A stretch of 64,000 bases of DNA from Basidiobolus meristosporus CBS 931.73 (GCA_002104905.1 MCFE01000402.1:1-64000), one strand, 5' to 3'; positions 24,861-53,710 are shown, numbered from the stretch's first letter. Notes: generated by a model not told the origin, from the sequence alone. Numbers and translations are program-made.

Positions 24861-25250
24861 TGGTTTGTTGTTGATGATAATAATAATAGGTAATAGAGGT
24901 GAGAGCTTTCTACTAAGAATCACTGGATTAGCTGGGAAAATAGGAGAATTCAGAAAAAATAAAATCGTTCTAGGAATCGCCCGCGCGCGCATGTGGGGGA
25001 AAAGAAAAGCCTGGGAACTGATCCGACCGTACCACCAGGACACCCCGGTGCTGGGTAGGCTCGGTTTGGTTGATGGTAGGGTCGGGGAGGCAAAGACAAA
25101 ATTTAAATGTGTAGCTATCTTGAGTGTGAATGGGTTTTGGTTTTAAACGTGGGGTTGATGGTTGCTTGTAAACAATCAGAGGGAAATCAAGGCGATGCGA
25201 TATCCCCTCTCGGATCGGCGCATCCCTGGCATCGCTCATGGCTTCTTGGC

Positions 25251-27594
25251 TCAGGAGTCTATCAAATTCGATCTGCCGTAGAAGAACAGGTAAGCCAGGC
25301 GTTCGGGGTGTTCAGCAACCACTTCTGACTCGGGGATGCGTGTGATATTCGTGTCGTCCATATGCAGCCATTCGCCGTTTTGTCGGAGAACGTCACAGGT
25401 ATAATGTCCACCGGCTGCGAGCATACCATGGTGATAAACCACTAAGAAAATTCCCGCCTTAGAGCTGATGCAACATAAAATGGTGGATCTCAAAATCAAT
25501 TACCTCCAATTAACTTGTAGGAAATAGGCTTGGTAACTGCTTTCGACGAAGACATGATTTCTATCCCAACAGTTAGTCATGGTGGTTGCATTCGGATGGA
25601 CTTGTCCTAGTTACCTGGTGCGATGTTAAGGTCGGTTGAGTATTGAATGTGCTTGTGAACTTTTTGGATCCCGCCGACGCTGTTGTACTCGAAACGCTTG
25701 AGATGAAGGATCAACACCGGTGGAAGTGTCTCGATAAACGTTTGTCGTGTGGCCTCGACCTGAATGCCTTGACTGGTGGTGAACCCATCAATATGATCTA
25801 GCTTGGTCACGTTGAGCAAGGCATCTTCAATGGTATGGATTCCGTCAGGCTACAACGCAATATCGTGTTAGACGTGGTTACAGCTATCAAAGATAACGAG
25901 CATGCCTCTTCATACCGCAATGTCAAGTTGAAGAGCTTGGAATGGCTCGAGTGTAACAGAGTCTTTGGAGCCTGGGCATCTCAAGATTGATCTAACTTGG
26001 CCACCGAAAATCTTCTTGATTGGTGTTTCAATAACTTCGGTCTAAGTTGTAACAGTTGCGATTAATATGGTGAAGTCCACTACATAGGGTTGAATAAATC
26101 GTACAGCTCGTGTGACGGATGTTTTGTTGCGTGGGCCGACTTCCATCCATTCACTTCCGGCTCCTGTGCCATTAGTGCCCTCGTGGCTGGGCTCGGAGGG
26201 ATCTTCTTGCGAATCGGTAACTTGTGGAAGGACTAATGCAGCATAAACGTTGAGCATTTGATATCAACTAGATTTTCATACAATGCTTACTTGACATGCA
26301 TTCTTCGTGAAGCCCATCCAAGAGAAATCCCAGAAACTCCTCAGCATCTTCCTGTCTTCCCTGCAGAAAAGGAAATGGCCGTCAGCGTACGATGAACAAA
26401 ACCAAAGTGGTTGGAAGACATACTCTCATAGAATTGAATCGCTTGAGACTGCGAAGGGCATCGTAGACGTATTCGGGAACGAACGCATCTTCATACTCGA
26501 CCACACCTACGTATATCTTTAGCTCCACATTCTATCAATCAACAGTCGATCCGTGCTCATTTACCTTGCGACTCCACATCGGGCCCTTCTTGAAACTCAT
26601 TGATGAACATTACTCTATACATAATTGATCAGAATCAGTCGGAATAAACGAGGGCTACGAATTCAATCTTACAATGAATCAATCAAGGGCGTTTTACTTT
26701 TGAAGCTGTGGACCACATTCTTGCTGATGTCTTTGACCAGAGTGTAGAAAGGCGCGATGTGTGCAAGAGGCTGCAAGATCTAGATTGAGCCAGGTTGGTG
26801 AGTACAGTGGGGCAGAGCATCGCTCATGATGGAACATACCGCATTCATAAAACATGTATTGCCATTGTTGACCAAGCCTCTAGGCCTGATCAATTTCCCG
26901 TCAAAGGAAACCTTGAAGTTGTGAAGTACGTCTGAGACGCAAGTATGGTTAGTAACCGACCGGTTTCGGAGTGGTATGCTGTTCACTCACTGTCAATCCC
27001 CTGCAAAGCGACCCGTCCATTCACTTTGGGTGTTTTGGTGATGTCTTTCGAAGAAGTGACTGCTCTGGTTGAGTCTTGTCCTTCGGGGTTGGTGGTTTGC
27101 GAGTTGGCAGCATTCTCTGCTGCTTGGGCTTTGGCTTTATTCTTGTTTCTCACCAAGTCAGCCCAACTTTTGGCCGCGGGAGGGGCGGTTTCAGTGGTGG
27201 TGGTGGTGGCGGCGGCGGCGGCGGTAGTATGATTAAAGATAGTAGTGGTATCTTGCGATAAGGCTAACAGACTGGTTTTAGTAAGGGGTCGCTGAGTCAT
27301 CGCAAACATATGCTCTTACTCGGTAAAGGTTTGATTTTCCACGGTAACTATCGCGTCGATAAGCAGAGACAAGTTAACACAAGGTGAATCGAAACAGGTT
27401 AACGAGAAATATAGATACCGAAAAGGTGACGTAACTGTCCACGACTTCGTTAATCTCTTCACGGCTCAAGTCTCCAAGCGTGTAATAAGGGTGTGTGATC
27501 TAGAATACAGGTACCCAATGGGAGGATAGAAACAACTTTGAATTAGACGACCAGGCAATCTACAGAATAGTGAGAGGGCTCGTACAGTTTTCAT
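25251..27594 (-). CDS. UBP3: Ubiquitin-specific protease, Ubp3/USP10-like; multi-exon, 5' end uncertain
   Basis: Cys box PRGLVNNGNTCFMNA, LPPVLILHLKRF, His box VVYHHGMLAAGGHYTCDV, and AYLFFY. KSWADLV motif in the low-complexity N-terminal region. Confidence 0.8.
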
Positions 27595-28305
27595 GGGTCC
27601 GAAGTTGCGATAAATAATGAACAGAGAAGGCGATGAAATTAAAAAAGTCTAACAGTCAAGATGAGCCGAATCAAAGGAAGTAAAATGCGAGTGAGTTATA
27701 AGTCAGTATGTGGAATGCAACATGCTCCAGGAGAAGAGGTTCGATTGAGTTGGTATAAGCGAGGTGTTGTGGTGAACTCGAGGGATTGCTTTCAAAGAGT
27801 TTCTATGCTGTATAGGTCGATGTCTTTTCCAGTCGAAAAAAAGTAGCAAACTGGGAACCCAACGCTTCCGAAATAAAATTACAAAGTCCAAAGTTTGAAC
27901 GAATTGGTGAGATTTGACGATATTGCGTGTTGAAGAATTTGCTAGCAGGGTACTGATGTTTGATGGTCAATGATAGGTGGAATCTTGGATCCCGCTTTTT
28001 TCTTTTTTTCTGAACCACAGCATTTAGTGTGAAGTGGTGGTTAGCCATCATGGGGGATGAAGCACGTGCTTTCAATTTGGGTTAATTTAATCCAACATTT
28101 GATTTTGTTGCGGGGTAGGAGGTGAAGGTATGGTTGATGAGGATGGTAAGAGTTGCCATGTATGTAGAATGGCCTACTTCTATAACCGGATTCAGAGTGC
28201 TGTGAGGGAAGGGCTACATTTACACAAAGTAGAGCAGGGGAATAGTGAATGTGATCTGGAAGATGTGCTGTAACAAGAGTCTGTATCCAAACATGCCATA
28301 TTTTC

Positions 28306-30241
28306 TTATTGCTGACTGCATTGAACACCTGGTCCACCTCTGCCTTCGTCTTCCTCATCCTCCTCGTATGCGTTTCCGCCAGAGGAGCCTGTGGTACCGT
28401 ACTAGACACGCAAGGTAAGTATTTCCAATGTTACTGCCGATAGCCGTTGAAATGTTACCTGTGAGATGTTAGAGTCATGCAGGTGAATCTCATCAATAAC
28501 CTCCGGACGGGCCGCTTCGGCAGGGCGAGGGGGGAGTACGCTTTCCAGAGTCTTTGAAGATCATTAGCCACCAAAAACGGGTCTCCAGCTAAATAAGTGA
28601 TTTCATACCTTGTATTCGGGGTTTGAGAGCCATCCATTAGGTGGGAACTCAACATCGAATTGAACATAAAGGTTTCCTTTGTCGAAAGGTCTCTTGTACT
28701 GAGGCATACCTTCGCCCATGATGCACTTGACATCCCCTACACCAAACAGTCAGCATTGCAAGGTGGTGCTGTATATTCAATAGAAAGCATTTACCAGGCT
28801 TGATGACCTCTCCAGGTGGGTGGTTCACAACCAAGCCACGACCATCCAAGTGAGTTACTATACATTTGGAGAATCCGCAAAGCGCCTCTGTCAAGGTGAT
28901 TTTAACATGGGCCAACAAGTCCGCCCCCTTTCTTTCGAAAGTGTCGTGGTCCTGTTGCTTCACAACTAGGACAACATCACCAGTTTCAATTCCAGGCTAT
29001 TGTGATATTCGATAAGTGTCTGCTTTGCTGAAGACGTGTCGAGCTTGGTTACCTCTTGGTCAGCTTCTCCTTTCACGACGATCTTTTGGCCGTCTTTCAT
29101 GCCCTTGTCGATGAATGCCTCAAGAATCTTGCGTTCGTTGGTGACCTTCTTGCCCTTACATTTCTTGCATCTATCTTTCTCCTTGATGATCTCTCCTTTA
29201 CCGTCACCTGGTAGTAATGTGTGATGAATACCATAATGCAACCAACAAATGCAGCCGAGGACTACACTTACATGAGGTACAAGCAACTTGCATCTGTTGC
29301 ATCATGCCAGGAGCGATCTGGCGCATGGTCATTTTGACACCGTGACCATCGCAGCTGGTACATTTCTTGACTGCGCCGGATTTTCCACCCTTGCTACATT
29401 GATAGGAAGATCAGTCCCCACCACAAGCGATCGGCTGTTCTATGCTTTACTAACCCATGACAGTGCGAGCAGATAACGTTCCTTTGGAGAGCCATCTTGG
29501 TGGCTTTACCGTTATAAAGGTCCTCAAGAGTTACTTTAAGAGGGTGTACGATATCCTCGCCACGTTGCTTCCAATTACGAGGGCCACCGGCTAACAACTT
29601 GATCAATCAATGCAATATGAGAAGCAAATAGGTGCGCCTTTTACCTCCAAATGAAGGACCCCCAAAGCCGCCACCGAAGAATTGAGCAAAAATGTCTTCG
29701 GGGTTCATTCCGTAGTCACCGCCTCCATTGCCGCCTTCTTCACCAAAGCGATCATAATGTTCTCTACATTTTTCTCCCATTGTTAAACCCGCTCCTGGAC
29801 AATCCAATTTTTCTTTCTGGTAAAACCAACCTCTTATCAGGATCGCTCAGAATCTCGTAAGCGTGGCTGATTTCCTTGAACTGGAATTGGAGAAGGTGTA
29901 TTAGTCAGCTGATTGAAGCCCTCGAAAGTCCTTTCCTAACCGACTTGCCTTTTCTCCTTCATCGGGGTTCTTGTCAGGATGGAATTTCATAGCCTGCAAG
30001 GGATGGGTCAGATAGAGCATGGTGTACGAGAGTGCCGGTTTCAGCGAGCTGTCTGGCTATCTATCTATTCGAGCGGGAATATCTCCCAAGTGAAATACTG
30101 ACCAATTTACGATAGGCCTAGAGAATTGGGATCAATACTTGTCTTGACTCGAGAATACTGGTGAATACTCAACGGTACCTTTTTGATTTCTGAATCAGTG
30201 GCATCTCTCTCGACACCCAAGATCTCGTAATAGCTAGACAT
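28306..30241 (-). CDS. YDJ1: Type I Hsp40/DnaJ chaperone with C-terminal CaaX
   Basis: J domain YYEILGV...[10 protein letters not shown] region, [20 protein letters not shown], CxxCxGxG repeats ([20 protein letters not shown]), ending GVQCSQQ-stop. Confidence 0.92.
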
Positions 30242-30900: not shown

Positions 30901-31378
30901 AGTTGAATCGCTTGTCCATAGTCTGCACGCTGTTGATGGTCACTTTGGCCAATGGAGATCACTTGCGGTTCACGAAGCCAGCTAGCAGTGGCCATATAGC
31001 TAGTACTTCAGTATCCAGCTACAACTTCAACCCGTTCCCTACTTAATGATAAACAAGGAGGTCGAGCTTGGTCACAAAAAAACAGAAGCACAGCTTCACC
31101 GCTTGAATTTTGGAACACTAATTCGGCGCTTGCTCTCACTGGAGCCTGCAGAGTTCCAATATGAATTTGGATTCAGGGACGCGAGATTTGTTCAGATGGA
31201 GCCTGGTGTAGCTGATCGGAAATATGATACCACTGGCGTTAAAGCACTAGACGATGACTCAGATTACTTCAGATAATGAGGATGAAGATGACGAGGACAC
31301 CAACCTAGAGGAGGCCGAGTTGTGGGGAAGGTTTGGCGGTCGTGGGCGATGGGACGTGGTAGATGGGGAAGATGGTAA
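30901..31378 (+). pseudogene. Array copy 1, degenerate A-type
   Basis: SIVCTLLMVTLANGDH is recognisable, but there is no ATG, an internal deletion, frameshifts and a shortened tail. Confidence 0.8.
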
Positions 31379-31805
31379 ACTACAGTGAACTTCACAATTT
31401 GCTCACAAGTCTGGATCATCACCAAGATTAGGCCTAATAAATGCCTAGAGCGATATGTGAAATGTAACATTAGCACTAACTGCTTTAATAAAGCCTACAA
31501 CAATTGTAAGACACTCAAATTCACTATCCTACCATTTCATAGCAATAATATACAGCTTTCAGCAAGGCCGCAAATGTTAAAGCAGTATTCACCTGCAGAT
31601 GACTGCCAAAGAATCACTTATCCCTACTATGCCTACTCATTAGGTAGTACTCTGGAGTTTTCTGGTAACAGAATAGCCACTTGCAACATTCAAAGGATCG
31701 TGAACTAATTCACTTTGCTGGCTACTTATTAGGCTACTCAAGCTTAGTGACCGATCTATATCCTATTTGTTGCGTTTATTATCCCAGCATTCTGATGACG
31801 GTGAG

Positions 31806-33150: not shown

Positions 33151-33718
33151 ATGTTTCCTAAAATTGCCATTGTCGGTTCGCTCTTGATGGCCACCCTGGC
33201 CTATGGTGACCATTTGAAGTTCGTTCAAGCCAGCAACCAGCAACAATGCAGCCATTGCCTCCGTGTCCAACCATGAATTCAACCCATTTTACAACACTGG
33301 TCATGGCATCCTCATTCCAAACTACCTGATAAATCGAGAGGTTGAGCTCGCACCAGAAGAAATCCGTCGACGCCACCTGAATATTGGTGCATTGATTGAT
33401 CGCTTACTCTCGCTGAAGACCTTGGGGTTCGCAAACGAGTTTGAGTTCAAGGGGGCAAGATTCATTGACTTGGAACCAGCCCATGAGTTTGTCACCAAGA
33501 ACACCGACATGAAGTATGGCACTACAAGTGATGAAGCAGTGAATGACAACTCCGACATTACTTCTGATAATGAGAATGAAGATAGCGAGGACACCAACCC
33601 AGAGGAAGCTGAGCTATGGGGAAGATTTGGCGGTCGTGGGCGCTGGAGACGTGGCAGATGGGGCCGTGGACGATGGGGACGCGGTCGCTGGGGACGTGGT
33701 AGATGGGGAAGATGGTAG
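33151..33718 (+). CDS. Array copy 3, A-type, +1 frameshift near 33226 (pseudogene or consensus error)
   Basis: Near-identical to copy 2 apart from one extra C in ttcgttCaag. Confidence 0.7.
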
Positions 33719-34765: not shown

Positions 34766-35405
34766 ATGCTTCTTAAACTATCCATTTTCTATTCCTTGTT
34801 GATGACCACTCTGGCTTATAGGGACCACTTGAGGTTCTTTGAGCCAGTCCGTAGTAACAATGCGGCCATTGCCTCCGTGTCTAGCCGTGCATTCGGACCA
34901 TTCTACTATACCGATCAAGGTGTAGTCTTACCCTACTTCATGCTGGGTGAAAATGTCGATATCATCCCAGAGGAGGCTCGAGTTCGTCGTCTGAAGGTAG
35001 GGAGCGTAATCAAGCGTTTGCCACACCGCAGGTACAAGAAAGTGCCTCGGAAGCATGGGCACAGGTATATCAAGAAGGCTGATGTGGAGCCAAATACTGA
35101 GCCTGCCACTAGTGAGAATGACGTTGGGCCTATATCGGAGCCTAAAGCTGGGAAGCCCATTGATGAGCCCGCTAAAGAACCGAAACAAGAGCTTGTAGAA
35201 GAGCCAGCCACTGGTGAGACAGATACTAAGACCACTGGCAACAATGAGGCTGTAAAAAACAACCCAGACATCGCATCTGATGAAGACAGCGAGAATGATG
35301 CTGACTCTGAGGAAGCCAAGCTCGGGTAGATGGGGCCGTGGAAGAGGAAGACGTGGCCGCTGGGGACGTGGTAGAAGAGGTCGTGGCAGATGGGGAAGAT
35401 GGTAA
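34766..35405 (+). pseudogene. Array copy 4, divergent A/B intermediate; 2-bp loss at ~35324 puts the R/W tail out of frame
   Basis: The ORF stops at EEAKLG-stop (35329). The tail RWGRGRGRRGRWGRGRRGRGRWGRW continues in another frame to TAA at 35405. Confidence 0.7.
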
Positions 35406-35941: not shown

Positions 35942-36536
35942 ATGCTTTTCAAACCTTCCGTTCTTTGCTCGCTACTGATGGCCACTATGGCCTATGGAGA
36001 TCACGCAAAGTTCTTCAAGCCAGCTGCCAGTAATACTATGGCCGTCGCTTCCGTATCTGACCACGGATTCAGTCCAATCGGCTACACTGATCAAGGTGTC
36101 ATCTTCCCCTACTACATGCTGGATGAAGATATCGAGATTACCCCAGAGGAGGCTCAGCTTCGTCGTCTGAAGATCGGGAGCATGGTGAAGCGTGCATCCC
36201 ATCACAAGTCCAAGAAGGTGTACAAGAAGCATAGCAAGAAACACCACAAGAAGACCAAGCATAAGGTTGGAGAGAAGACCGATGTAGAGCCAATGACTGA
36301 GCCAACCACAGGTGAGGGCGATGTTGATGCTCCTGTCAATGATGAGGCAGCCGAGGATGACTTGGATATTGCAGCTGACGAAGACAACGAGGATGACACT
36401 GACCCTGAGGAAGCCGAGCTCTGGGGTCGCTGGGGCCGTGGAAGGTGGGGACGCGGTCGGTGGGACGAGGCGCTGGGGACGTGGGAGATGGGGCCGTGGC
36501 AGATGGGGACGTGGTAGATGGGGAAGAAGATGGTAA
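35942..36536 (+). CDS. Array copy 5, B-type, two 1-bp deletions inside the tail (~36461-36471)
   Basis: MLFKPSVLCSLLMATMAYG signal and K/H tract. The tail switches frame at G and C homopolymers. Confidence 0.75.
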
Positions 36537-37111: not shown

Positions 37112-37709
37112 ATGATTTTCAAGCCTTCAGTTCTTTGCTCGCTACTAATGGCCACCCTGGCCTATGGCGATCATGCGAAGTTCTTCAAGCCAGCTGCCAG
37201 TGGCAGTGTGGCCGTCGCTTCCATATCCAACCACGGATTCAGTCCAATCCGCTACACTGATCAAGGTGTCATCTTCCCCTACTACATGCTGGATGAAGAT
37301 ATCGAGATTACCCCAGGAGGAGGCTCAGCTTCGTCGTCTGAAGATCGGCAGCATGGTGAAGCGTGCACCCCATCATAAGTACAAGAAGGTGTACAAGAAG
37401 CATAGCAAGAAGCACCACAAGAAGACTGAGCATAAGGTTGGAGAGAAGACCGATGTGGAGCCAATGACTGAGCCATCCCACGGTGAGGGCGATGTCGATG
37501 CTCCTGTCAATGATGAGGCAGCCGAGGATGACTTGGATATTGCAGCTGACGAAGACAACGAGGATGACACTGACCCTGAGGAAGCCGAGCTCTGGGGTCG
37601 CTGGGGCCGTGGAAGGTGGGGACGCGGTCGGTGGGGACGTGGCCGCTGGGGACGTGGGAGATGGGGCCGTGGCAGATGGGGACGGGGTAGATGGGGAAGA
37701 AGATGGTAA
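37112..37709 (+). CDS. Array copy 6, B-type, +1 G frameshift at ~37316
   Basis: Split across ORFs 37019-37378 and 37164-37709, which join into a normal B-type precursor. Confidence 0.75.
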
Positions 37710-38294
37710 ATCCATAGTGGATCCAACCATATTCTCAGTACCGAAGCAACAGCAAGACTTCTAGTTCATGTATTGATATGATTAGGCAGTGCTCATTCCA
37801 GCCAATCATTATACAATAAATCAATTTTAGGAGTGATCACACCCACTGTTTTTTCGATTTAGATTTATCACACATGGGATCATGATATGAAAAAGATTGG
37901 GTACCTCTGGACTAAAAAGCAGCCTACCCACATCTTGCTCACGAGACATTGATGAAAGAAGTACCATCAAGAATCTAGTATTTAAGCTATCTTTATGGCG
38001 TTTACAGTGCTAGCAGGTCGATGAGTGTAATCCATACGTGCAGTGGACACTTATTACAACAATTAGGCTCAATAGGATATGGGCGCATATCCTATAGTAA
38101 GACTTCAGCGGGTGAAGAGTTTGAAGTGGAACAAGCAATATAATAAGGTCGACTCAATATAGGTAGCTCCATGAGCTAAATCTAGCATTGGAGGGGCTCT
38201 TATGCATAAAAATAGCGCCTTTGCTGTCTCGAAAATCATACTAGAGCTTTCCAAAGTCGTTGTAAACCACTCTAGCAGCACCTGCCACTCGAAG

Positions 38295-38890
38295 ATGATT
38301 TTCAAACCTTCCGTCCTTTGCTCGCTACTAATGGCCACACTGGCCTATGGTGATCATGCGAAGTTCTTCAAGCCAGCTGACAGTAGCAATATGGCTGTCG
38401 CTTCCGTGTCTGACCACGGATTCAGTCCAATCCGCTACACTGATCAAGGTGTCATCTTCCCCTACTACATGCTGGATGAAGACATCGAGATTACCCCAGA
38501 GGAGGCTCAGCTTCGTCGTCTGAAGATCGGGAGCATGGTGAAGCGTGCACCCCATCATAAGTACAAGAAGGTGTACAAGAAGCATAGCAAGAAGCACCAC
38601 AAGAAGACTGAGCATAAGGTTGGAGAGAAGACCGATGTAGAGCCAATGACTGAGCCAACCACAGGTGAGGGCGATGTCGATGCTCCTGTCAATGATGAGG
38701 CAGCCGAGGATGACTTGGATATTGCAGCTGACGAAGACAACGAGGATGACACTGACCCTGAGGAAGCCGAGCTCTGGGGTCGCTGGGGCCGTGGAAGGTG
38801 GGGACGCGGTCGGTGGGGACGTGGCCGCTGGGGACGTGGGAGATGGGGTCGGGCAGATGGGGCCGTGGCAGATGGGGAAGAAGATGGTAA
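38295..38890 (+). CDS. Array copy 7, B-type, -1 frameshift in the tail (~38851)
   Basis: Normal up to (GRGRW)4, then reads ADGAVADG because one T is missing. Confidence 0.75.
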
Positions 38891-39505
38891 ATCCTAGGTG
38901 GATTCAACCATATTCTCAATACCAAAGCAACAGCAAGACTTCTAGTTCATGTATTGATATGATTAGGCAGTGCGCATCCCAGCCAATCATCATACAATAA
39001 ATCAATTTTAGGAGTGATCATACCCGCTATTGTTTCATTTTCCCAATTTTAGGATTCATTTCATCCAGTATTGTTTCTTTTTCGATATGTCACACATGTT
39101 ATTTTGATCTGGAAAACTGGGGTGCCTTTTGACTAAAAAGCGGTTCAGCCTCTCCTCTCTTTCAAGATAACAATGCAAGGAGGGCTTTAAAGTGCCTAGT
39201 CTATGAGCTATCTAGAGTACACTACGAGAAGTGTCTGTCTGTGTTTATGATACATGTGACATGTACTGACTGAGCCAATGCTTCCTACGGTGTTTGCACA
39301 TGATCAAGAGTAAAATTTAACGGATGAAGAGTTTAATGTCGAAGAAGCAACATAATATAGTCAAGCCAATATAGGTAGCTCAAAGAGTAAAGTCTAATAT
39401 TGGAAAGCTCTTGTGCATAAAAGGGTCCAGTGCGCACCTTCAAGAATCATACTAGAGCTTTCCAAAGTAGCTGTAAACCACTCTAGCAACACCTACTACT
39501 CGAAG

Positions 39506-40099
39506 ATGCTTTTCAAACCTTCCGTTCTTTGCTCGCTACTGCTGGCCACCCTAGCCTATGGAGATCACGCAAAGTTCTTCGAGCCAGCTGCCAGTAGCAA
39601 TATGGCCGTCGCTTCCGTGTCTGACTACGGATTCAGTCCAATCCGCTACACTGATCAAGGTGTCATCTTCCCCTACTACATGCTGGATGAAGACATCGAG
39701 ATTACCTCGGAGGAGGCTCAGCTTCGTCGTCTGAAGATCGGGAGCATGGTGAAGCGGGCGCCCCATCACAAGTCCAAGAAGGTCTACAAGAAGGTGACCA
39801 AGAAGCACCACAAGAAGCACCACAAGACGACCAAGCATAAGGTTGGAGAGAAGACCGATGTAGAGCCAATGACTGAGCCAACCACAGGTGAGGTAGATGT
39901 CGATGCTCCTGTCAATGATGAGGCAGCGGTGAATGACCCAGATGTTGCAACTGACGAAGACAACGAGGATGACACTGACCCTGAGGAAGCCGAGCTCTGG
40001 GGTCGCTGGGGCCGTGGAAGGTGGGGACGCGGTCGGTGGGGACGTGGCCGCTGGGGCCGTGGCAGATGGGGACGGGGTAGATGGGGAAGAAGATGGTAA
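39506..40099 (+). CDS. Array copy 8, B-type precursor, 33-aa tail
   Basis: Intact; WGRW(GRGRW)5GRRW. Confidence 0.9.
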   Translation: MLFKPSVLCSLLLATLAYGDHAKFFEPAASSNMAVASVSDYGFSPIRYTDQGVIFPYYMLDEDIEITSEEAQLRRLKIGSMVKRAPHHKSKKVYKKVTKKHHKKHHKTTKHKVGEKTDVEPMTEPTTGEVDVDAPVNDEAAVNDPDVATDEDNEDDTDPEEAELWGRWGRGRWGRGRWGRGRWGRGRWGRGRWGRRW

Positions 40100-40607
40100 A
40101 TCCTACGTGGATCCAACCATATCCTCAATACCAAAGCAACAGCAAGACTTCTAGTTCATGTATTGATATGATTAGGCAGTGCGCATCCCAGCCAATCATT
40201 ATACAATAAATCAATTTTAGGAGTGATCACACCCACTATTGTGTCATTTTAGATTTATCACACATGGTATCATGATATGAAAGAGATTGGGTTCCTCTGG
40301 GCTAATAAGGGCGTTTAGCGTTCTGGTCGGTCTCTAAGTGTAATATGTATTAGCAGTGGACACTGGTACTACTAATTTGGCTCATTGGACAGTGGGCCCA
40401 TATCCAAGAGTAAAACTTCAACGGGTGAAGAGTTTGAAGTCGAACAAGCAATATATTAATGTTGACTCAATATCTGTAGCTCCATGAGCTAAATCTAGTA
40501 TTGGAAGGGCTCTTATGCATAAAAATCGCGCTTTTGCTGTCTCGAGAATCATACTAGAGCTTTCCAAAGTCGCTGTAAACCACTCTAGCAACACCTGCCA
40601 CTCGAAG

Positions 40608-41264
40608 ATGATTTTCAAACCTTCCGTCCTTTACTCGCTACTGATGGCCACACTGGCCTATGGTGATCATGCGAAGTTCTTCAAGCCAGCTGCCAGTAGC
40701 AGTGTGGCCGTTGCTTCCGTATCTGACCACGGATTCAGTCCAATCCGCTACACTGATCAAGGTGTCGTCTTCCCCTACTACATGCTGGATGAAGATATCG
40801 AGATTACCCCAGAGGAGGCTCAGCTTCGTCGTCTGAAGATCGGGAGCATGGTGAAGCGTGCATCCCATCACGAGTCCAAGAAGGTGTACAAGAAGGTGAC
40901 CAAGAAGGTGACCAAGAAACATAGCAAGAAACACCACAAGAAGCACCATAAGAAGCACCACAAGAAACACCACAAGAAGACTAAGCATAAGGTTGGAGAG
41001 AAGACCGATGTGGAGCCAGTGACTGAGCCAACCCACGGTGAGGGTGATGTCGATGCTCCTGTCAATGATGAGGCAGCCGAGGATGACTTGGATATTGCAG
41101 CTGACGAAGACAACGAGGATGACACTGACCCTGAGGAAGCCGAGCTCTGGGGTCGCTGGGGCCGTGGAAGGTGGGGACGCGGTCGGTGGGGACGAGGCCG
41201 CTGGGGCCGTGGGAGATGGGGCCGTGGCAGATGGGGACGGGGTAGATGGGGAAGAAGATGGTAA
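40608..41264 (+). CDS. Array copy 9, B-type precursor, expanded K/H tract, 38-aa tail
   Basis: Intact; KKVY-KKVT-KKVT-KKHS-(KKHH)4; WGRW(GRGRW)6GRRW. Confidence 0.9.
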   Translation: MIFKPSVLYSLLMATLAYGDHAKFFKPAASSSVAVASVSDHGFSPIRYTDQGVVFPYYMLDEDIEITPEEAQLRRLKIGSMVKRASHHESKKVYKKVTKKVTKKHSKKHHKKHHKKHHKKHHKKTKHKVGEKTDVEPVTEPTHGEGDVDAPVNDEAAEDDLDIAADEDNEDDTDPEEAELWGRWGRGRWGRGRWGRGRWGRGRWGRGRWGRGRWGRRW

Positions 41265-41879
41265 ATCCTAGGTGGCTCCCACCACATCCTCAATACCGAA
41301 GCAACAGCAAGACTTCTAGTTCATGTATTGATATGATTAGGCAGTGCGCATCCCAGCCAATCATTATACAATAAATCAATTTTAGGAGTGATCATACCCG
41401 CTATTGTTTCATTTTCCCAATTTTAGGATTCATTTCATCCAGTATTGCTTCTTTTTCGATATGTCACACATGGTATTTTGATCTGGAAAACTGGGGTGCC
41501 TTTTGACTAAAAAGCGGTTCAGCCTCTCCTCTCTTTCAAGATAACAATGCAAGGAGGGCTTTAAAGTGCCTAGTCTATGAGCTATCTAGAGTACACTAAG
41601 AGAAGTGTCTGTCTGTGTTTATGATACATGTGACATGTACTGACTGAGCCAATGCTTCCTACGGTGTTTGCACATGATCAAGAGTAAAATTTAACGGGTG
41701 AAGAGTTTGATGTCGAAGAAGCAACATAATATAGTCAAGCCAATATAGGTAGCTCAAAGAGTAAAGTCTAATATTGGAAAGCTCTTGTGCATAAAAGGGT
41801 CCAGTGCGCACCTTCAAGAATCATACTAGAGCTTTCCAAAGTAGCTGTAAACCACTCTAGCAACACCTACTACTCGAAG

Positions 41880-42487
41880 ATGCTTTTCAAACCTTCCGTC
41901 CTTTACTCTCTACTGATGGCCACACTGGCCTATGGAGATCATGCGAAGTTCTTCAAGCAAGCTGCCAGTAGCAATATGGCCGTCGCTTCCGTGTCTGACT
42001 ACGGATTCAGTCCAATCCGCTACACTGATCAAGGTGTCATCTTCCCCTACTACATGCTGGATGAAGACATCGAGATTACTCCAGAGGAGGCTCAACTTCG
42101 TCGTCTGAAGATCGGGAGCATGGTGAAGCGGGCGCCCCATCACAAGTCCAAGAAGGTCTACAAGAAGGTGACCAAGAAGCATAGCAAGAAGCACCACAAG
42201 ACGACCAAGCATAAGGTTGGAGAGAAGACCGATGTAGAGCCAATGACTGAGCCAACCACAGGTGAGGGCGATGTCGATGCTTCTGTCAATGATGAGGCAG
42301 CCGAGGATGACTTGGATATTGCAGCTGACGAAGACAACGAGGATGACACTGACCCTGAGGAAGCCGAGCTCTGGGGTCGCTGGGGCCGTGGAAGGTGGGG
42401 ACGCGGTCGGTGGGGACGTGGCCGCTGGGGACGTGGGAGATGGGCCGTGGCAGATGGGGACGGGGTAGATGGGGAAGAAGATGGTAA
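41880..42487 (+). CDS. Array copy 10, B-type, -1 G frameshift in the tail (~42442)
   Basis: agatgggccg versus agatggggccg in sister copies. Confidence 0.75.
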
Positions 42488-42996
42488 ATCCATAGTGGAT
42501 CCAACCATATTCTCAATACCAAAGCAACAGCAAGACTTCTAGTTCATGTATTGATATGATTAGGCAGTGCGCATCCCAGCCAATCATTATACAATAAATC
42601 AATTTTAGGAGTGATCGCATCCACTATTGTTTCATTTTAGATTTATCACACATGGTATCATGATATGAAAGAGATTGGGTTCCTCTGGGCTAATAAGGGC
42701 GTTTAGCGTTCTGGTCGGTCTCTAAGTATAATATGTATTAGCAGTGGACACTTTGTACTACTAATTTAGCTCATTGGACAGTGGGCCCATATCCAAGAGT
42801 AAAACTTCAACGGGTGAAGAGTTTGAAGTCGAACAAGCAATATATTAATGTTGACTCAATATCTGTAGCTCCATGAGCTAAATCTAGTATTGGAAGGGCT
42901 CTTATGCATAAAAATAGCGCTTTTGCTGTCTCGAGAATCATACTAGAGCTTTCCAAAGTCGCTGTAAACCACTCTAGCAACACCTGCCACTCGAAG

Positions 42997-43653
42997 ATGA
43001 TTTTCAAACCTTCCGTCCTTTACTCGCTACTGATGGCCACACTGGCCTATGGAGATCATGCGAAGTTCTTCAAGCCAGCTGACAGTAGCAATATGGCTGT
43101 CGCTTCCGTGTCTGACCATGGATTCAGTCCAATCCGCTACACTGATCAAGGTGTCATCTTCCCCTACTACATGCTGGATGAAGATATCGAGATTACCCCA
43201 GAGGAGGCTCAGCTTCGTCGTCTGAAGATCGGGAGCATGGTGAAGCGTGCACCCCATCAGGAGTCCAAGAAGGTGTACAAGAAGGTGTACAAGAAGGTGA
43301 CCAAGAAGGTGACCAAGAAACATAGCAAGAAACACCACAAGAAGCACCACAAGAAACACCACAAGGAGACTAAGCATAAGGTTGGAGAGAAGACCGATGT
43401 GGAGCCAGTGACTGAGCCAACCCACGGTGAGGGTGATGTCGATGCTCCTGTCAATGATGAGGCAGCCGAGGATGACTTGGATATTGCAGCTGACGAGGAC
43501 AACGAGGATGACACTGACCCTGAGGAAGCCGAGCTCTGGGGTCGCTGGGGCCGTGGAAGGTGGGGACGCGGTCGGTGGGGACGTGGCCGCTGGGGACGTG
43601 GGAGATGGGGCCGTGGCAGATGGGGACGGGGTAGATGGGGAAGAAGATGGTAA
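42997..43653 (+). CDS. Array copy 11, B-type precursor, expanded K/H tract, 38-aa tail
   Basis: Intact ORF. Confidence 0.9.
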   Translation: MIFKPSVLYSLLMATLAYGDHAKFFKPADSSNMAVASVSDHGFSPIRYTDQGVIFPYYMLDEDIEITPEEAQLRRLKIGSMVKRAPHQESKKVYKKVYKKVTKKVTKKHSKKHHKKHHKKHHKETKHKVGEKTDVEPVTEPTHGEGDVDAPVNDEAAEDDLDIAADEDNEDDTDPEEAELWGRWGRGRWGRGRWGRGRWGRGRWGRGRWGRGRWGRRW

Positions 43654-44238
43654 ACCCTTGGTGGCTCCCACCACATCCTCAATACCGAAGCAACAGCAAG
43701 ACTTCTAATTCATGTATTGATATGATTAGGCAGTGCTCATTCCAGCCAATCATCATACAATAAATCAATTTTAGGAGTGATCACACCCACTGTTTTTTCG
43801 ATTTAGATTTATCACACATGGTATCATGATATGAAAAAGATTGGGTACCTCTGGACTAAAAAGCAGCCTACCCACATCTTGCTCACGAGATATTGATGAA
43901 AGAAGTATAATCGTAAGGCTAGTAGTCAAGCATTCTTAAGGGCGTTTACCGTTCTGGTCGGTTTCTGAGTGTAATCTGTATAAGCAGTGGACACTGGTAC
44001 TACTAATTAGGCTTATTAGGCTGTGGGCGCATATCCCAGAGTAAGACTTCAACGGTTAAAAAGTTTGAAGTCGAACAAGCAATATAATAAGGCCGAATCA
44101 ATATAGGAAGCTCCATGAGCCAAATATAGTATTGGAGGGGCTCTTATGCATAAAAACAGCGCTTTTGCTATCTCGAGAATCATACTAGAGCTTTCCAAAG
44201 TAGCTGTAAACCACTCTAGCAACACCTACAACTCGAAG

Positions 44239-47770: not shown

Positions 47771-48352
47771 ATGCTTTTCAAACCTTCCGTTCTTTGCTCG
47801 CTACTGCTGGCCACCCTAGCCTATGGAGATCACGCGAAGTTCTTTAAGCCAGCTGCCAGTAGCAGTGTGGCCGTCGCTTCCGTGTCTGACCACGGATTCA
47901 GTCCAATCCGCTACACTGATCAAGGTGTCATCTTCCCCTACTACATGCTGGATGAAGATATCGAGATTACCCCAGAGGAGGCTCAGCTTCGTCGTCTGAA
48001 GATCGGGAGTATGGTGAAGCGGGCGCCCCATCACAAGTACAAGAAGGTGACCAAGAAGCATAGCAAGAAGCATCACAAGAAGACCGAGCATGAGGTTGGA
48101 GAGAAGACGGATATGGAGCCAATGACTGAACCAACCACCGGTGAGGTTGATGTCGATGCTCCTGTCAATGATGAGGCAGCCGAGGATGACTTGGATATTG
48201 CAGCTGACGAAGACAACGAGGATGACACTGACCCTGAGGAAGCCGAGCTCTGGGGTCGCTGGGGCCGTGGAAGGTGGGGACGCGGTCGGTGGGGCCGTGC
48301 GAGATGGGGCCGTGGCAGATGGGGACGAGGTAGATGGGGAAGAAGATGGTAA
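47771..48352 (+). CDS. Array copy 15, B-type precursor, 33-aa tail with one G-to-A change
   Basis: Intact; WGRWGRGRWGRGRWGRARWGRGRWGRGRWGRRW. Confidence 0.9.
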   Translation: MLFKPSVLCSLLLATLAYGDHAKFFKPAASSSVAVASVSDHGFSPIRYTDQGVIFPYYMLDEDIEITPEEAQLRRLKIGSMVKRAPHHKYKKVTKKHSKKHHKKTEHEVGEKTDMEPMTEPTTGEVDVDAPVNDEAAEDDLDIAADEDNEDDTDPEEAELWGRWGRGRWGRGRWGRARWGRGRWGRGRWGRRW

Positions 48353-48915
48353 ATCCGAAATGGATTCAATCAAGTCCTCAAAATTCTTGCCACAAGAACA
48401 GTTCTGGTACATGTATTGATATGATTAGGCAGTGCTCACCTTTGCCAACCATTATACAATAAAGTAGATTTTAGGAGTGACTGTTCCTCTCGATGATTCG
48501 TAACGATCATTTCAGGAATTATGACCTGTCATGCTTTCTGTATCGCAGAATGGGTTAGCAATAATCTCCAGTGTATAAACATGTCAATTCGCTTCATTCA
48601 TTTGGTAAGGTGATACAGTATCATAATAGTGTTTGTTATCTATGTTGGTAATCGCGTGTCTGACATCTATTCCATGGAATATTAGATCATTTTAAAAAAT
48701 ATCGACCTGTGTTGGTGGCCTTTTAAGTCGCGAATGATTTTGTGGTTTCTGAATTTGATGTGGCTTACGAGGTTAGATTTGAAAGAACGATATAATAAGG
48801 TGATGCTAGCATTTAGTTCTCAATGAGCTTATTTTGGTGCTAGAATTTGCTCATGAAAGCACCACATCTGTTCTCCCAAGAAGCAGATCTGAATTTTTTC
48901 AAGAGAAACGGAAAT

Positions 48916-49477
48916 ATGCAAACCTTCAATTCTCTGCCCCCTATTGATGGCAACTCTGGCTTATGGAGACCACTTGAAATTTATCAAGCCTTCCGCTAGT
49001 AATAATGCGGCCATTGCCTCCGTGTCCAACCGCGAATTCAACCCATTCCACAACACTGGCCATGGCGTCCTCATTCCTAACTACCTGATCAATAGGGAGA
49101 TTGAACTCGCACCAGAAGAAGTCCGCCTGCGTCGCTTGAATATTGGTGCATTGATTGAGAGCATACTCTCACTGAAAGCCTTGGGGTTCCCAAATGAGTT
49201 TGAGTTCAAGGGTGCAAGATTCATTAGCTTCGAGCCAACCGGTATATTCGACACAGGCGAGACTGGCATGAAATATGACACTACCAGTGATGAGGCAGTT
49301 GAAGATAACCCCGATATTACCGCTGATGATGAGGATGAGGATGAAGATGCCACTGACCCAGAAGAGGCCGAGCTATGGGGCAGGTTTGGTGGCTGTGGAC
49401 GTTGGAGACGAGGAAGATGGGGCCGTGGCAGGTGGCGTCGCGGCCGCTGGGGACGTCGTAGATGGGGAAGATGGTAG
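48916..49477 (+). pseudogene. Array copy 16, A-type; small deletion after the ATG removes the start of the signal peptide
   Basis: ATG C AAA CCT versus ATG CTT TTC AAA CCT in other copies; first in-frame Met is MATLAYG. The TATA-like element is also changed (ATGAAA), and the tail contains a Cys. Confidence 0.6.
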
Positions 49478-50171
49478 ACTGCAGTGTGCCTCATTCTTTG
49501 CTCTAGTGGTGGATAAGGCCTAGAATGATATGTGAAATGTAACGTTGGTAACAACTACTTTCATAAAGCCTACGACTATAAAGAAGACAATAAAATTCTC
49601 TATTCCACAATATCTTGGTTACATTATACAGCTTTTGATGAGGTCTTAAATATCTAAACAGATTCCACTTTACATCCAATCCAAAGAACATGTTGATTAC
49701 TGTATATAAATATAACGGTCACGCAATAGCAACAGTAATTAATGAGGATGAACAGCTTGAAATCGAGAGATCAACCGTGGTAATACAGTATGTGAAATTC
49801 TCGTGTCATCATCTGCATTCGCAATACAAAAATAAACGGGTTGCTAACGAGGGCGAGAGTAAAACGATTGAAGGACTGGGTAGTATCTAATTAAAATTGG
49901 ATGGCAGATAACGGTGGTGTGAAGTATTCAAATAACTAACGATGGATCGAACTCTATTCCAAATGAGAATACTCGCTATGCTTCCTATTTGCTGCACCAT
50001 ACATCGCGAAGTATAGAGCTATAAATGGGCGAAGAGCAAAATAGAGATATATTAAAGTGAACGAAATGAACTCGAGTCTAAATAAGTAACTAGATGGCGA
50101 TAAAAAACATTAAATCCGCATCCGAAAAATCGTTATTCGACAACAACGCCTAATTACCCAATCGCAAAATA

Positions 50172-50741
50172 ATGATGTTTCTCAAGTCTTCCGTTTTCTC
50201 CTCGTTCCTAATGGTCACTTTAGCTTACGGGGACCGTTCAATATTCTTCAAGCCAGCGACCAGCAACAATGCGGCCATTGCCTCCGTGTCCAACCGCGAA
50301 TTCAACCCATTCCACAACACTGGCCATGGCATCCTCATTCCAAACTACCTGATAAATCGAGAGGTTGAGCTCGCACCAGAAGAAATCCGTCGACGCCACC
50401 TGAATATTGGTGCATTGGTTGATCGCTTACTCTCGCTGAAGACCTTGGGGTTCGCAAACGAGTTTGAGTTCAAGAGGGCGAGATTCATTGACTTGGAGCC
50501 AGCCCATGAATTTGTCACCAAGAACACCGACATGAAGTATGGCACTACAAGTGATGAAGCAGTGAATGACAACTCCGACATTACTTCTGATAATGAGGAT
50601 GAAGATGACGAGGACACCAACCCAGAGGAAGCTGAGCTATGGGGAAGATTTGGTGGTCGTAGACGTTGGGGGCGTGGCAGATGGGGTCGCGGAAGGTGGG
50701 GACGCGGTCGCTGGGGACGTGGAAGATGGGGAAGATGGTAG
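50172..50741 (+). CDS. Array copy 17, A-type precursor (189 aa)
   Basis: Intact; tail WGRFGGRRRW(GRGRW)4GRW. Confidence 0.88.
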   Translation: MMFLKSSVFSSFLMVTLAYGDRSIFFKPATSNNAAIASVSNREFNPFHNTGHGILIPNYLINREVELAPEEIRRRHLNIGALVDRLLSLKTLGFANEFEFKRARFIDLEPAHEFVTKNTDMKYGTTSDEAVNDNSDITSDNEDEDDEDTNPEEAELWGRFGGRRRWGRGRWGRGRWGRGRWGRGRWGRW

Positions 50742-51375
50742 ACTGCAATATGCCGCATTCTTCGCTTCACTTACGGAGATACTTCCTGGGATGGCATCTG
50801 AAAAATACCTCAGTTGTATTTTCAAGTAATGATTGAACCGGTCATGCTAAATAAAGACTTCTCATCTATGCAACAGTTCCTTCATTTTGTTATCTGAATA
50901 TTCTAACAGATGCTCTAGACAAGTTTGGCTACAACAGCATGCCTCAATGTCAATTCCATGTGTATTGGTCAATGCGAAGCCTTCTTCCCCATAATTGCCT
51001 CTGATGTCGTCATGATGAATATGCTATAGCTAAAATGCCGACTTGCGAGTCAGGTACTAGCTATGTATTCTGCAGCTCTCTGGAGTTTCCAGCAGCAGAA
51101 TATTCACTTGCGGTATACAAATTTCCAAGAAATACATTCACTTAGCCGACTATATGTAGTCTACTCAAGCTTGACACCCGATCCATTTATTATTTGTTGT
51201 GTTAGTTACGTCGATGCTCCAAAGGCAATGAGTTTAATAAAGCATGCCTGGATTGGGTGAATTGAATGATAATGAGTCTAACTAAGCAATTCAACCAGAA
51301 TAAAAGCGCATCAAAGAGTCTCCAAAAACTCAGACTTGAGCTCTCCAAAGCAACTACACCTAAAAGTACCCGAAG

Positions 51376-51942
51376 ATGTTTCCTAAAATTGCCATTGTCG
51401 GTTCGCTCTTGATGGCCACCCTGGCCTATGGCGACCATTTTAAGTTCTTCAAGCCAGCGACCAGCAACAATGCGGCCATTACCTCCGTGTCCAACCACGA
51501 ATTCAACCCATTCCACAACACTGGCCATGGCATCCTCATTCCAAACTACCTGATAAATCGAGAGGTTGAGCTCGCACCAGAAGAAATCCGTCGACGCCAC
51601 CTGAATATTGGTGCATTGATTGATCGCTTACTCTCGCTGAAGACCTTGGGGTTCGCAAACGAGTTTGAGTTCAAGAGGGCAAGATTCATTGACTTGGAAC
51701 CAGCCCATGAGTTTGTCACCAAGAACACCGACATGAAGTATGGCACTACAAGTGATGAAGCAGTGAACGACAACTCTGACATGACTTCTGACAATGTGGA
51801 TGAAGATGACGAGGACACCAACCCAGAGGAAGCTGAGCTATGGGGAAGATTTGGTGGTCGTAGACGTTGGGGACGTGGTAGATGGGGTCGTGGACGATGG
51901 GGACGCGGTCGCTGGGGACGTGGTAGATGGGGAAGATGGTAA
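51376..51942 (+). CDS. Array copy 18, A-type precursor (188 aa)
   Basis: Intact ORF. Confidence 0.9.
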   Translation: MFPKIAIVGSLLMATLAYGDHFKFFKPATSNNAAITSVSNHEFNPFHNTGHGILIPNYLINREVELAPEEIRRRHLNIGALIDRLLSLKTLGFANEFEFKRARFIDLEPAHEFVTKNTDMKYGTTSDEAVNDNSDMTSDNVDEDDEDTNPEEAELWGRFGGRRRWGRGRWGRGRWGRGRWGRGRWGRW

Positions 51943-52512
51943 ACTACAGTGAATTTCACAATTTGCTCACAAGTCTGGATCATCACCAAGATTAGGCCTA
52001 ATAAATGCCTAGAGCGATATGTGAAATGTAACATTAGCACTAACCGCTTTAATAAAGCCTACAACAATTGTAAGACACTCAAATTCACTATCCTACCATT
52101 TCATAGCAGTAATATACAGCTTTCAGCAAGACCGCAAATGTTAAAGCAGTATTCACCTGCAGATGACTGCCAAAGAATCACTTATCCCTACTATGCCTAC
52201 TCATTAGGTAGTACTCTGGAGTTTTCTGGTAACAGAATAGCCACTTGCAACATTCAAAGGATCGTGAACTAATTCACTTTGCTGGCTACTTATTAGGCTA
52301 CTCAAGCTTAGTGACCGATCTATATCCTATTTGTTGCGTTTATTATCCCAGCATTTTGATGACGGTGAGTATAATAAACCATATCTGAATTGAGTGAATT
52401 GAATGATAATGAGTCTAACTAAGCAATTCAACCAGAATAAAAGCGCATCAAAGAGTCTCCAAAAACTCAGACTTGAGCTCTCCAAAGCAACTACACCCAA
52501 AAGTACCCGAAG

Positions 52513-53079
52513 ATGTTTCCTAAAATTGCCATTGTCGGTTCGCTCTTGATGGCCACCCTGGCCTATGGTGACCATTTGAAGTTCGTTAAGCCAGCAACCA
52601 GCAACAATGCAGCCATTGCCTCCGTGTCCAACCACGAATTCAACCCATTCCACAACACTGGCCATGGCATCCTCATTCCAAACTACCTGATAAATCGAGA
52701 GGTTGAGCTCGCACCAGAAGAAATCCGTCGACGCCACCTGAATATTGGTGCATTGATTGATCGCTTACTCTCGCTGAAGACCTTGGGGTTCGCAAACGAG
52801 TTTGAGTTCAAGAGGGCGAGATTCATTGACTTGGAGCCAGCCCATGAGTTTGTCACCAAGAACACCGACATGAAGTATGGCACTACAAGTGATGAAGCAG
52901 TGAACGACAACTCTGACATGACTTCTGACAATGTGGATGAAGATGACGAGGACACCAACCCAGAGGAAGCTGAGCTATGGGGAAGATTTGGTGGTCGTAG
53001 ACGTTGGGGACGTGGCAGATGGGGTCGCGGAAGGTGGGGACGCGGTCGCTGGGGACGTGGTAGATGGGGAAGATGGTAG
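52513..53079 (+). CDS. Array copy 19, A-type precursor (188 aa)
   Basis: Intact ORF. Confidence 0.9.
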   Translation: MFPKIAIVGSLLMATLAYGDHLKFVKPATSNNAAIASVSNHEFNPFHNTGHGILIPNYLINREVELAPEEIRRRHLNIGALIDRLLSLKTLGFANEFEFKRARFIDLEPAHEFVTKNTDMKYGTTSDEAVNDNSDMTSDNVDEDDEDTNPEEAELWGRFGGRRRWGRGRWGRGRWGRGRWGRGRWGRW

Positions 53080-53710
53080 ACTGCAATGTGCTTCGTTCTT
53101 TGCCCCAATGGTGCAAACAATTTCTTGGATGGCAGCTAAAGAACGCCTGTGTTATATTTTCAAGCAAAGATTGATCCAGTTGTACTAAATAAAGACTATT
53201 CATCAACGCAACAGTACAATCATTGTTATTTGAAGATTTCAATAAATGTTCTTGATATAAAAGACACCTCAATGGTAACTCGATATACAATATTCAACAT
53301 AAGACCTTTCTCCTTATGAGTACCTTAAATGCTATAGTAATATATATGTGACTACAAAGCCTATCCGTGAAACTACAAAAAATTTACTCTCCCGGTTGTA
53401 CTCCAAGATTTACCAGCAGCTCAACGTTTGCTTGCGACATTTAAATGACTGAGATATCGATGCATTTACCTGATTACTCGTTTGTCTACTCAATCTTGGT
53501 ATTCAATCTATTTCTTACTTCCTGTGCTTACTTTCCCTACGCCTTGAATACGATGAGTATAATAAGGCATATATGAGTTGAGAGAGCTGACTGATAACGA
53601 GTCTAACTAATCAAATCAGTCAGAATAAAAGCACACCAAAGAGTCTCAAAAAATTCAGATTTGAGCTCTCGAAAGCAAGTGCAAGTACCTCAACTGACAA
53701 GTTACTAAGA

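Follow-up and report, generated by a model that had tools for sequence, protein, structure and literature searches.

A tandem array of predicted secreted precursors

The window, a stretch of 64,000 nucleotides from Basidiobolus meristosporus CBS 931.73 (GCA_002104905.1 MCFE01000402.1:1-64000), carries an array of 22 paralogous precursor genes arranged head-to-tail. The array consists of copy 1, which is a fragment, the A-type copies (2, 3, and 16-21), the B/C-type copies (5-15), and two divergent copies, namely copy 4 and the terminal copy 22. The B/C copies are near-identical paralogues (~90% identity), and the nearest database proteins are hypothetical proteins of the same strain. The gene studied here, at 39506-40099 on the plus strand, is an intact ORF of 197 codons plus TAA. 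The array and the features of this gene are as follows.

31251-57961, plus strand: array of 22 paralogous precursor genes, head-to-tail (six-frame scan and signal-peptide scan)
39506-40099, plus strand: focal gene, copy 8 of the array, B/C type
39506-39562, plus strand: predicted signal peptide, residues 1-19, with the cut between ...LATLAYG and DH (n-, h-, and c-regions judged by eye)
39563-39706, plus strand: N-terminal pro-region, residues 20-67, with the acidic LDEDIEIT at its end (conserved in alignments A1-A3)
39707-39724, plus strand: motif 1, S68-E-E-A-Q-L73 (PEEAQL in sister copies); P68 and E70 conserved at ≥90%; start of a predicted AF2 helix (residues 68-83)
39725-39730, plus strand: R74-R75, canonical dibasic (kexin-type) site straight after motif 1 (RR in 29/33 members)
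39752-39757, plus strand: K83-R84, second dibasic site read from the sequence, with Ala-Pro next (weighted frequency of R84 in the family profile, 0.81)
39758-39841, plus strand: Lys/His-rich block, residues 85-112, made of 12-nt tandem repeats (units read from the sequence)
39842-39979, plus strand: acidic spacer, residues 113-158, net charge about -20 by charge count, predicted disordered by AF2
39980-39997, plus strand: motif 2, P159-E-E-A-E-L164, the most constrained protein segment (pN = 0.000 at pS = 0.72)
39995-40006, plus strand: L164-W-G-R167, which fits the expanded Kex2 motif LxxR; L164 and R167 nearly invariant; putative cut after R167
39998-40096, plus strand: Arg/Trp/Gly tail W165...W197, (GRGRW)n, net charge +13, encoded by a 15-nt tandem repeat

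Module 1 of the focal copy reads L60-DEDIEIT-S68EEAQL73-R74R75-LKIGSMVKR84-APHHK and then runs into the (KKxx)n Lys/His block. Module 2 reads DEDNEDDTD-P159EEAEL164-WGRW(GRGRW)n and ends at residue 197, and the segment over its putative junction is DTDPEEAELWGRWGRGRW. The intervening acidic spacer is rich in Pro and Thr. The only RR of the focal tail lies at its very end, and the focal Lys/His block contains KK only.

This two-module layout of the B/C copies (acidic run, PEEA(Q/E)L, cationic block) had been described in an original prediction made from the sequence, and our reading confirmed it, with SEEAQL as motif 1 of the focal copy and PEEAQL in the other intact B/C copies. We likewise found both modules in copy 22 (ITPEEAQL-RRLKMKK... 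and DNAEETEL-WRRF), a retained motif position in the A-types (APEEIRRR/APEEVRLRR) without the Lys/His block, and the EEAR noted in copy 4, which there reads PEEARV. A cationic stretch comparable to the Lys/His block of the B/C copies is present in copy 4, copy 22, and several members from Basidiobolus ranarum, and is absent from the A-types.

All copies keep a hydrophobic N-terminus with A-x-G before D20, which we called as a signal peptide by inspection; AF2 places a helix at residues 5-17, inside this predicted signal peptide. The public model K493DRAFT_357305 starts further upstream, at an in-frame ATG or GTG within 39413-39505. This upstream codon sits in a TATA-like GCATAAAA box, and a start there would leave the signal peptide buried. 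In the A-type copies, the corresponding stretch contains stop codons. The signal-peptide ATG is more likely to be the start, and the public models therefore seem mis-annotated. On the minus strand, every tail is mirrored by a long antisense ORF (PRPHLPRPQRP...), for example at 39784-40134; these ORFs arise from the GGN/CGN/TGG repeat codons and do not constitute evidence of genes.

This assembly shows disruptions in eight of the 22 copies (31251-31385, 33151-33715, 34766-35402, 35942-36533, 37112-37706, 38295-38887, 41880-42484, and 48893-49474), for which contig-level reads cannot separate pseudogenes from assembly indels. Copy 1 is a tail fragment that reads LEEAEL, copy 16 lacks an ATG, and copies 3, 4, 5, 6, 7, and 10 contain frameshifts. 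The frameshifts lie early in copies 3 and 6 (in copy 6 at a G run within motif 1), directly behind SEEAKL in copy 4, and within the 15-nt tail repeats in copies 5, 7, and 10. The public models K493DRAFT_357305 and P0001 share breaks seen in the disrupted copies. The sequencing runs that matched the locus were DNA runs in the form of Logan contigs, and no RNA run contained it.

Locus context and synteny

In the window, the array is flanked on the left by UCH and DnaJ genes at 25.2-29.6 kb (25245-29589) and on the right by DOLK (58.5-59.9 kb), Arf (61.2-62.0 kb), and WDR26 (from 63.5 kb), the right flank block lying within 58469-63876. The family lies between UCH/DnaJ and DOLK/Arf/WDR26 both in B. 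meristosporus and in B. ranarum (contigs L002 and L004). Because both flanks are syntenic, the array represents a single orthologous, fast-evolving locus, with extra loci in B. ranarum. The orientation of the UCH-DnaJ block relative to the array is inverted between the two species.

A second contig of the same strain, L001 (GCA_002104905.1 MCFE01001163.1), matches the right end of the array (window positions 48273-63064) at 99.5% identity and has approximately two A-type copies fewer than the window. Its copy 22 allele differs by two residues, both outside the motifs. This contig would be an allelic haplotype, or else the product of a collapsed assembly that differs in copy number. In a DNA run from another sample with the same species label, compared with window positions 38000-43900, we found pieces only 85-95% identical to the tail-coding region and to the module 1 region (40781-40847), which suggests that a diverged strain or relative also has the family.

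Relatives in Basidiobolus ranarum and scope of the family

An exhaustive profile search with the N-region as query against 1.84 billion representatives returned ten matches. Besides same-species proteins and P0006, all of them came from B. ranarum. P0006, a protein of 3303 residues, was rejected as a spurious hit to a repetitive protein. Word-based protein searches returned matches in the same species or the same subfamily only, with no distant relatives. For the focal family, Pfam gave sub-threshold noise only, a PDB sequence search gave no match, and the ESM Atlas gave no usable match. A literature search on WGRGRW-type strings returned nothing relevant and no literature on the family, and the supplements of a survey of Kex2-processed repeat proteins (KEPs; PMC7329392) do not contain these sequences. 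Across these searches, the family appears to be restricted to Basidiobolus.

Further members were obtained by re-reading ORFs on the contigs of the B. ranarum matches. These contigs hold a five-copy array (L003), a three-gene cluster adjoining DnaJ-Pmp3-UCH (L002), and a single gene adjoining DOLK-Arf-WDR26 (L004). In the B. ranarum members, the module 1 sequence is TPEE[SAG]Q[LM]RR and that of module 2 is [SAT]PEETEL. P0012 has only module 1 and a short cationic C-terminus, and the gene on L004, the positional orthologue of copy 22, carries module 2 only. The two modules thus occur independently, in a cassette-like manner, in these natural variants. In B. ranarum, a subfamily with at least 11 genes, of which five lie in tandem (L003:437-7870, P0008, P0013-P0018), has (GRG/GRF)n tails that are capped by an acidic Cys-rich end, GWNDDCGGDDCGDC.

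Conservation and selection at the two motifs

We compared members from both species in a 22-sequence alignment (A3), in which the non-B members are 30-51% identical to the focal protein. Outside the signal peptide, the only columns conserved at ≥90% were P68 and E70 in motif 1; E160, E161, E163, and L164 in motif 2; R167, G169, and R172 in the junction after motif 2; and R187 at one more tail position. The weighted information profile peaked at residues 64-75 and 159-172.

Comparison of the A with the B types shows nearly saturated synonymous sites, and at a pS of 0.72 the pN of motif 2 was 0.000, so the constraint acts on the protein and not on the DNA. The pN/pS ratios of the other segments were 0.17 for the tail start, 0.28 for motif 1, 0.33 for the acidic spacer, 0.43 for the N-region, and ~1.1 for the Lys/His or A-insert segment. 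Motif 2 was also kept in B. ranarum subfamilies only 30-38% identical overall. The original prediction had named loss of the motif from distant homologues as one result that would refute it, and in B. ranarum the motif is kept. Judged by these alignments and substitution rates, the motif is real and under selection at both acid-to-base transitions.

The alignments further indicate that the conserved element exceeds PEEAxL, and comprises PEE-x-(Q/E)-L followed by Arg or Arg-Arg within 0-2 residues. At the family level, module 1 reads (I/L)-T-P-E-E-(S/A/G)-Q-(L/M)-R-R-(V/L/I)-x-(L/I)-G, and module 2 reads P-E-E-(T/A)-E-L followed by W-G-R, W-R-R, Y-R-R, or directly by R-R. In the A-types, module 1 reads PEEIRR or PEEVRL; PEE alone is common to all, and the A-x-L part is not kept.

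The two modules differ in context, since motif 1 is embedded in a contiguous conserved stretch of ~33 residues (~G52 to R84) that includes a predicted helix, whereas motif 2 is an island of conservation within predicted disorder. The proposal that one module is repeated twice in each precursor is therefore not supported. Of 3000 shuffles that preserved the composition of the 119-residue non-repetitive core, 138 (4.6%) contained a pair of 6-mers with at least 5/6 identical positions. Local alignment of the two 37-residue modules gave p ~0.005 in the B copies, in windows chosen beforehand, and was not significant in the A copies or copy 22. By both measures, the repetition alone is only marginally beyond chance. 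An internal duplication was considered and rejected, with the alignment marginal in B, not significant in A and copy 22, and homology of the modules not demonstrated. It is the conservation that exceeds chance.

Predicted structure and charge

Two AF2 runs, with 10 and 22 aligned sequences, gave mean pLDDT values of 46 and 50, and the focal protein is predicted to be essentially disordered. The sole helix outside the signal peptide spans residues 68-83 and starts at motif 1. The pLDDT of this block is ≤67, and the helix is weak evidence because confidence is low throughout. An amphipathic helix after motif 1 was considered and dropped, since the hydrophobic moment was significant only in P0008 and P0012 of B. 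ranarum and not in the B. meristosporus copies. Over residues 88-159 the pLDDT is below 50, and motif 2 lies in disorder, with at most three helical residues and Gly-rich sequence next to it.

From N- to C-terminus, the net charges of the blocks are about -7, +14, -21, and +15 in the B/C copies, which sum roughly to zero, and about 0, +3, -17, and +13 in the A-types. The ranges are -20 to -24 for the spacer, +14 to +24 for the Lys/His block, and +13 to +15 for the tail, and the mature totals are mostly between -3 and +5 in both species. We infer that the genes encode secreted, mostly disordered proteins with alternating charge blocks.

A candidate kexin-type junction after each motif

Kex2 specificity has been given as Arg at P1, a variable P2 with a preference for Lys, any residue at P3, and Leu or another aliphatic residue at P4 (bioRxiv 10.1101/2020.05.27.120113; PMC8528282). 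In vitro, it cuts LxxR junctions between a disordered pro-domain and the mature part of fungal effectors, an observation from Ascomycota, whereas Basidiobolus belongs to Zoopagomycota (bioRxiv 10.1101/2020.05.27.120113; PMC8528282).

The focal ELWGR/W matches this expanded motif: P4 is taken by L164, which is invariant, and P1 by R167, which is nearly so. In module 1, both QLRR and MVKR end in canonical Kex2-type sites. Among the 31 members with module 2, LxxR was found in 16, LxxR plus RR in 4, L-RR in 9, and neither in 2; the LxxR count is inflated and Arg near Leu is partly expected, because the tails are ~40% Arg. After motif 2, L-x-x-R occurs in B. meristosporus and L-RR in B. ranarum, together in 29/31 members. 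At module 1, 29 of the 33 members have RR at or within the end of the motif and 4 do not. The two members with neither LxxR nor a dibasic pair at module 2, P0014 (ELRH) and P0018 (ELRG), are both from B. ranarum and still have PEETEL.

The original prediction had argued that, with no KR or RR directly before the Arg/Trp tail, Kex2 could not release the tail precisely and a non-Kex2 protease would be needed. The lack of a dibasic pair at this place was borne out for the B/C copies and most A copies, but not for copies 21 and 22 (ELWRR). The conclusion drawn from it is not supported by the census above. The prediction had also counted the RR directly after motif 1, and the KR at residue 84 nine residues further on, as the start of the cationic peptide and not as dibasic sites.

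We tentatively propose, at somewhat less than an even chance, that PEE-x-(Q/E)-L plus Arg constitutes a kexin junction, anchored by Leu, at which acidic pro-pieces meet cationic cargo. In these terms the motif looks like a variant of an ordinary fungal Kex2-type site and not like a signal for a new protease. The disorder around motif 2, the cancellation of charge, and the independent occurrence of the two cassettes count in favor of this reading, as does the finding of a kingdom-wide survey that predicted Kex2-processed repeat proteins are more numerous in B. meristosporus (43) than in any other fungus surveyed (PMC7329392).

Several features count against the kexin reading. The PEE-x-E part (P5-P9) is better conserved than P2 and P3, and none of it is required by plain Kex2 sites. 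P2 is Gly (LWGR) in the B/C copies and most A copies, and Gly is not among the residues listed as tolerated there (Lys, Arg, Thr, Pro, Glu, or Ile; PMC8528282). P0014 and P0018 lack both a basic pair and LxxR. In addition, motif 1 lies in a predicted helix and a longer conserved region, an unusual setting for cleavage. The invariant PEE-x-E upstream of Leu thus goes beyond known Kex2 specificity, and may be a helix N-cap, an exposure element, or an extra recognition determinant.

The layout of the sequence, its conservation under purifying selection, the syntenic position, and the disorder were established here; the following scheme for secretion, cleavage, the protease, and any antimicrobial or other activity of the products is inferred. 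The precursor would enter the secretory pathway as a pre-pro-protein by means of its predicted signal peptide. The candidate sites would be the RR after motif 1, joined by KR84 in the B/C copies, and, behind motif 2, L-x-x-R in B. meristosporus and L-RR in B. ranarum. The N-terminal pro-region would come off through cuts after R75 and R84. Late in the secretory pathway, a cut after R167 would release the Arg/Trp tail, from W168 onwards, from its neutralizing acidic pro-piece. Cationic peptide precursors with an anionic propiece are built on such a plan, as are fungal Kex2-processed pro-domain proteins.

Alternative explanations

PEE-x-(Q/E)-L could instead be the site of a dedicated non-kexin endoprotease that cuts after Leu (L/RR, L/W) and releases Lys/His-rich and Arg/Trp-rich peptides, which we regard as rather unlikely. 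In favor of such an enzyme, E160, E161, E163, and L164 are more conserved than the Arg positions after them, PEETEL persists in P0014 and P0018, and a Gly that is poor for Kex2 (PMC8528282) stands at P2 in most B. meristosporus copies; a conserved island in disorder is also typical of a short linear recognition motif. However, a Leu-specific cut does not need the Arg or Arg-Arg that follows the motifs in 29/31 and 29/33 members, the A-types share only PEE at module 1 and do not keep the A-x-L part, and the comparison with the spider processing quadruplet motif (PQM) breaks down over Arg at -1, by which the PQM is defined (PMC7889660). The first cationic block, moreover, has no mark at its C-terminal end. 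The original prediction had one precursor yielding two cationic products; the Lys/His block does not end in a conserved element, so the sequence gives no sign that a free first peptide is released. To our knowledge, no fungal protease has PEE-x-(Q/E)-L specificity.

Equally doubtful in our estimate is the possibility that the motifs are not sites of proteolysis. The proteins would then act as intact secreted block polyampholytes (coacervate, adhesive, or coat), with the motifs serving as structural elements, an N-cap box (T/S/D-P-E-E) at the start of a helix or hinge, or as docking sites for a partner that is not a protease, for example a receptor for sorting or a chaperone. Helix N-caps classically read T/S-P-E-E, the type that the motif matches, and the sole non-signal helix predicted by AF2 begins precisely at residue 68. 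The net charge of the whole protein is near zero in most members of both species, and conservation extends to both sides of motif 1. Against a structural role, motif 2 is followed by Gly-rich sequence and predicted helical for no more than three residues, the helix at motif 1 is weak evidence given the mean pLDDT of 46-50, and helical amphipathicity after motif 1 is not significant in the B. meristosporus copies. Arg or Arg-Arg is also kept directly after Leu.

Somewhat more doubtful still is that PEE-x-E-L is a Basidiobolus-specific processing or sorting signal read by a non-kexin factor, for example a Leu-directed endoprotease, giving two peptides per precursor in a manner that is PQM-like but independent. 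Other short-linear-motif functions, such as sorting, take up the remaining probability. An ER-retrieval-like C-terminus (-TEL or -AEL after a Leu cut) was dropped, because module 1 (-QL) does not fit it.

That the repeat is a functionless by-product of acidic composition and very recent duplication is very improbable: comparable 6-mer pairs do arise in shuffles and the B/C paralogues are near-identical, but motif 2 shows no change between the A and B types, whose synonymous divergence is saturated, persists in the remote B. ranarum subfamilies, and deviates in disrupted copies (LEEAEL in copy 1, SEEAKL in copy 4).

Comparison with known precursors

The Kex2-processed pro-domain (K2PP) effectors of fungi (SnTox3, ToxA, and Fol SIX1/4/6) have a signal peptide, for which the present family has a candidate, and share with it a disordered pro-domain rich in disorder-promoting residues and an LxxR or dibasic junction (bioRxiv 10.1101/2020.05.27.120113; PMC8528282). 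The K2PP junction (LxxR, KR, or RR) is present in 29/31 members at module 2 and 29/33 at module 1, and the disordered region that precedes it is also found here (pLDDT <50 over residues 88-159, in an acidic, Pro/Thr-rich spacer). Unlike K2PP proteins, which have a folded mature domain, the present family has a low-complexity cationic tail. The junction occurs twice, the second time near the C-terminus rather than within the protein's first half; only module 1 (residues 74-75) has the position expected of K2PP proteins, and module 2 (residues 164-167 of 197) does not. The family further differs in its invariant PEE-x-E before Leu, the P2 Gly of most copies, and its host in Zoopagomycota, and its cleavage is putative.

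KEPs and alpha-factor-type precursors resemble the family as secreted precursors (here by prediction), and the species is rich in predicted KEPs (PMC7329392). KEP-like RR at regular spacing, which splits the core repeats, is found in the tail of copy 22 ((F/Y)G(P/R)FRR units) and in P0005 of B. ranarum (HDYDRYRR units). In contrast, the (GRGRW)n tails of the focal B/C copies and the A copies have no dibasic separators, and would therefore stay one long peptide. The family has also been amplified as whole genes and not as intragenic cores. The RR-spaced tails of copy 22 (57407-57961), P0005, and L004:976-1344 would yield many short aromatic peptides that are not strongly cationic, unlike the (GRGRW)n output.

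The original prediction had drawn a parallel with spider peptide precursors. In those with PQM/iPQM linkers, such as latarcins and cupiennins, anionic pieces alternate with cationic peptides, as here, and the junctions contain Glu (PMC7889660). The PQM is defined by Arg at -1 plus Glu at -2 to -4 (PMC7889660). The parallel fails on this definition, because PEEA(Q/E)L ends in Leu. When the register is moved to the next Arg, LWGR (B/C and A copies) and QLRR (module 1) contain no Glu at these positions, whereas ELRR (B. ranarum), EEIR/EEVR (module 1 of the A-types), and EEAR (copy 4) fit formally. The far end of the first cationic block also lacks the inverted motif of the iPQM, and there is no homology between the two systems.

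In animal defensin, cathelicidin, and amphibian prepropeptides, an acidic pro-piece is charge-matched to cationic cargo, and Arg/Trp-rich chemistry is typical of membrane-active peptides. A similar balance is found here, where the spacer (-20 to -24) faces the tail (+13 to +15) and the Lys/His block (+14 to +24). The family has no sequence relationship to the animal anionic-propiece precursors, its tails are simple repeats, and its activity is putative.

Implications

Early-diverging fungi are almost unexplored for ribosomal secreted peptides, and Basidiobolus inhabits the guts and dung of amphibians and reptiles, in competition with bacteria. The family described here is amplified, fast-evolving, and genus-restricted, and the acid-to-base junction is its one sharply conserved feature. 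If the processing site is true, exact mature termini are predicted (W168 for a kexin cut, W165 for a cut after Leu), which can be checked by mass spectrometry. The LxxR-type Kex2 rule would then extend from ascomycete effectors to Zoopagomycota, or a second signal would be layered on top of it. If the proteins are uncleaved, they would represent an unusual class of secreted block polyampholytes.
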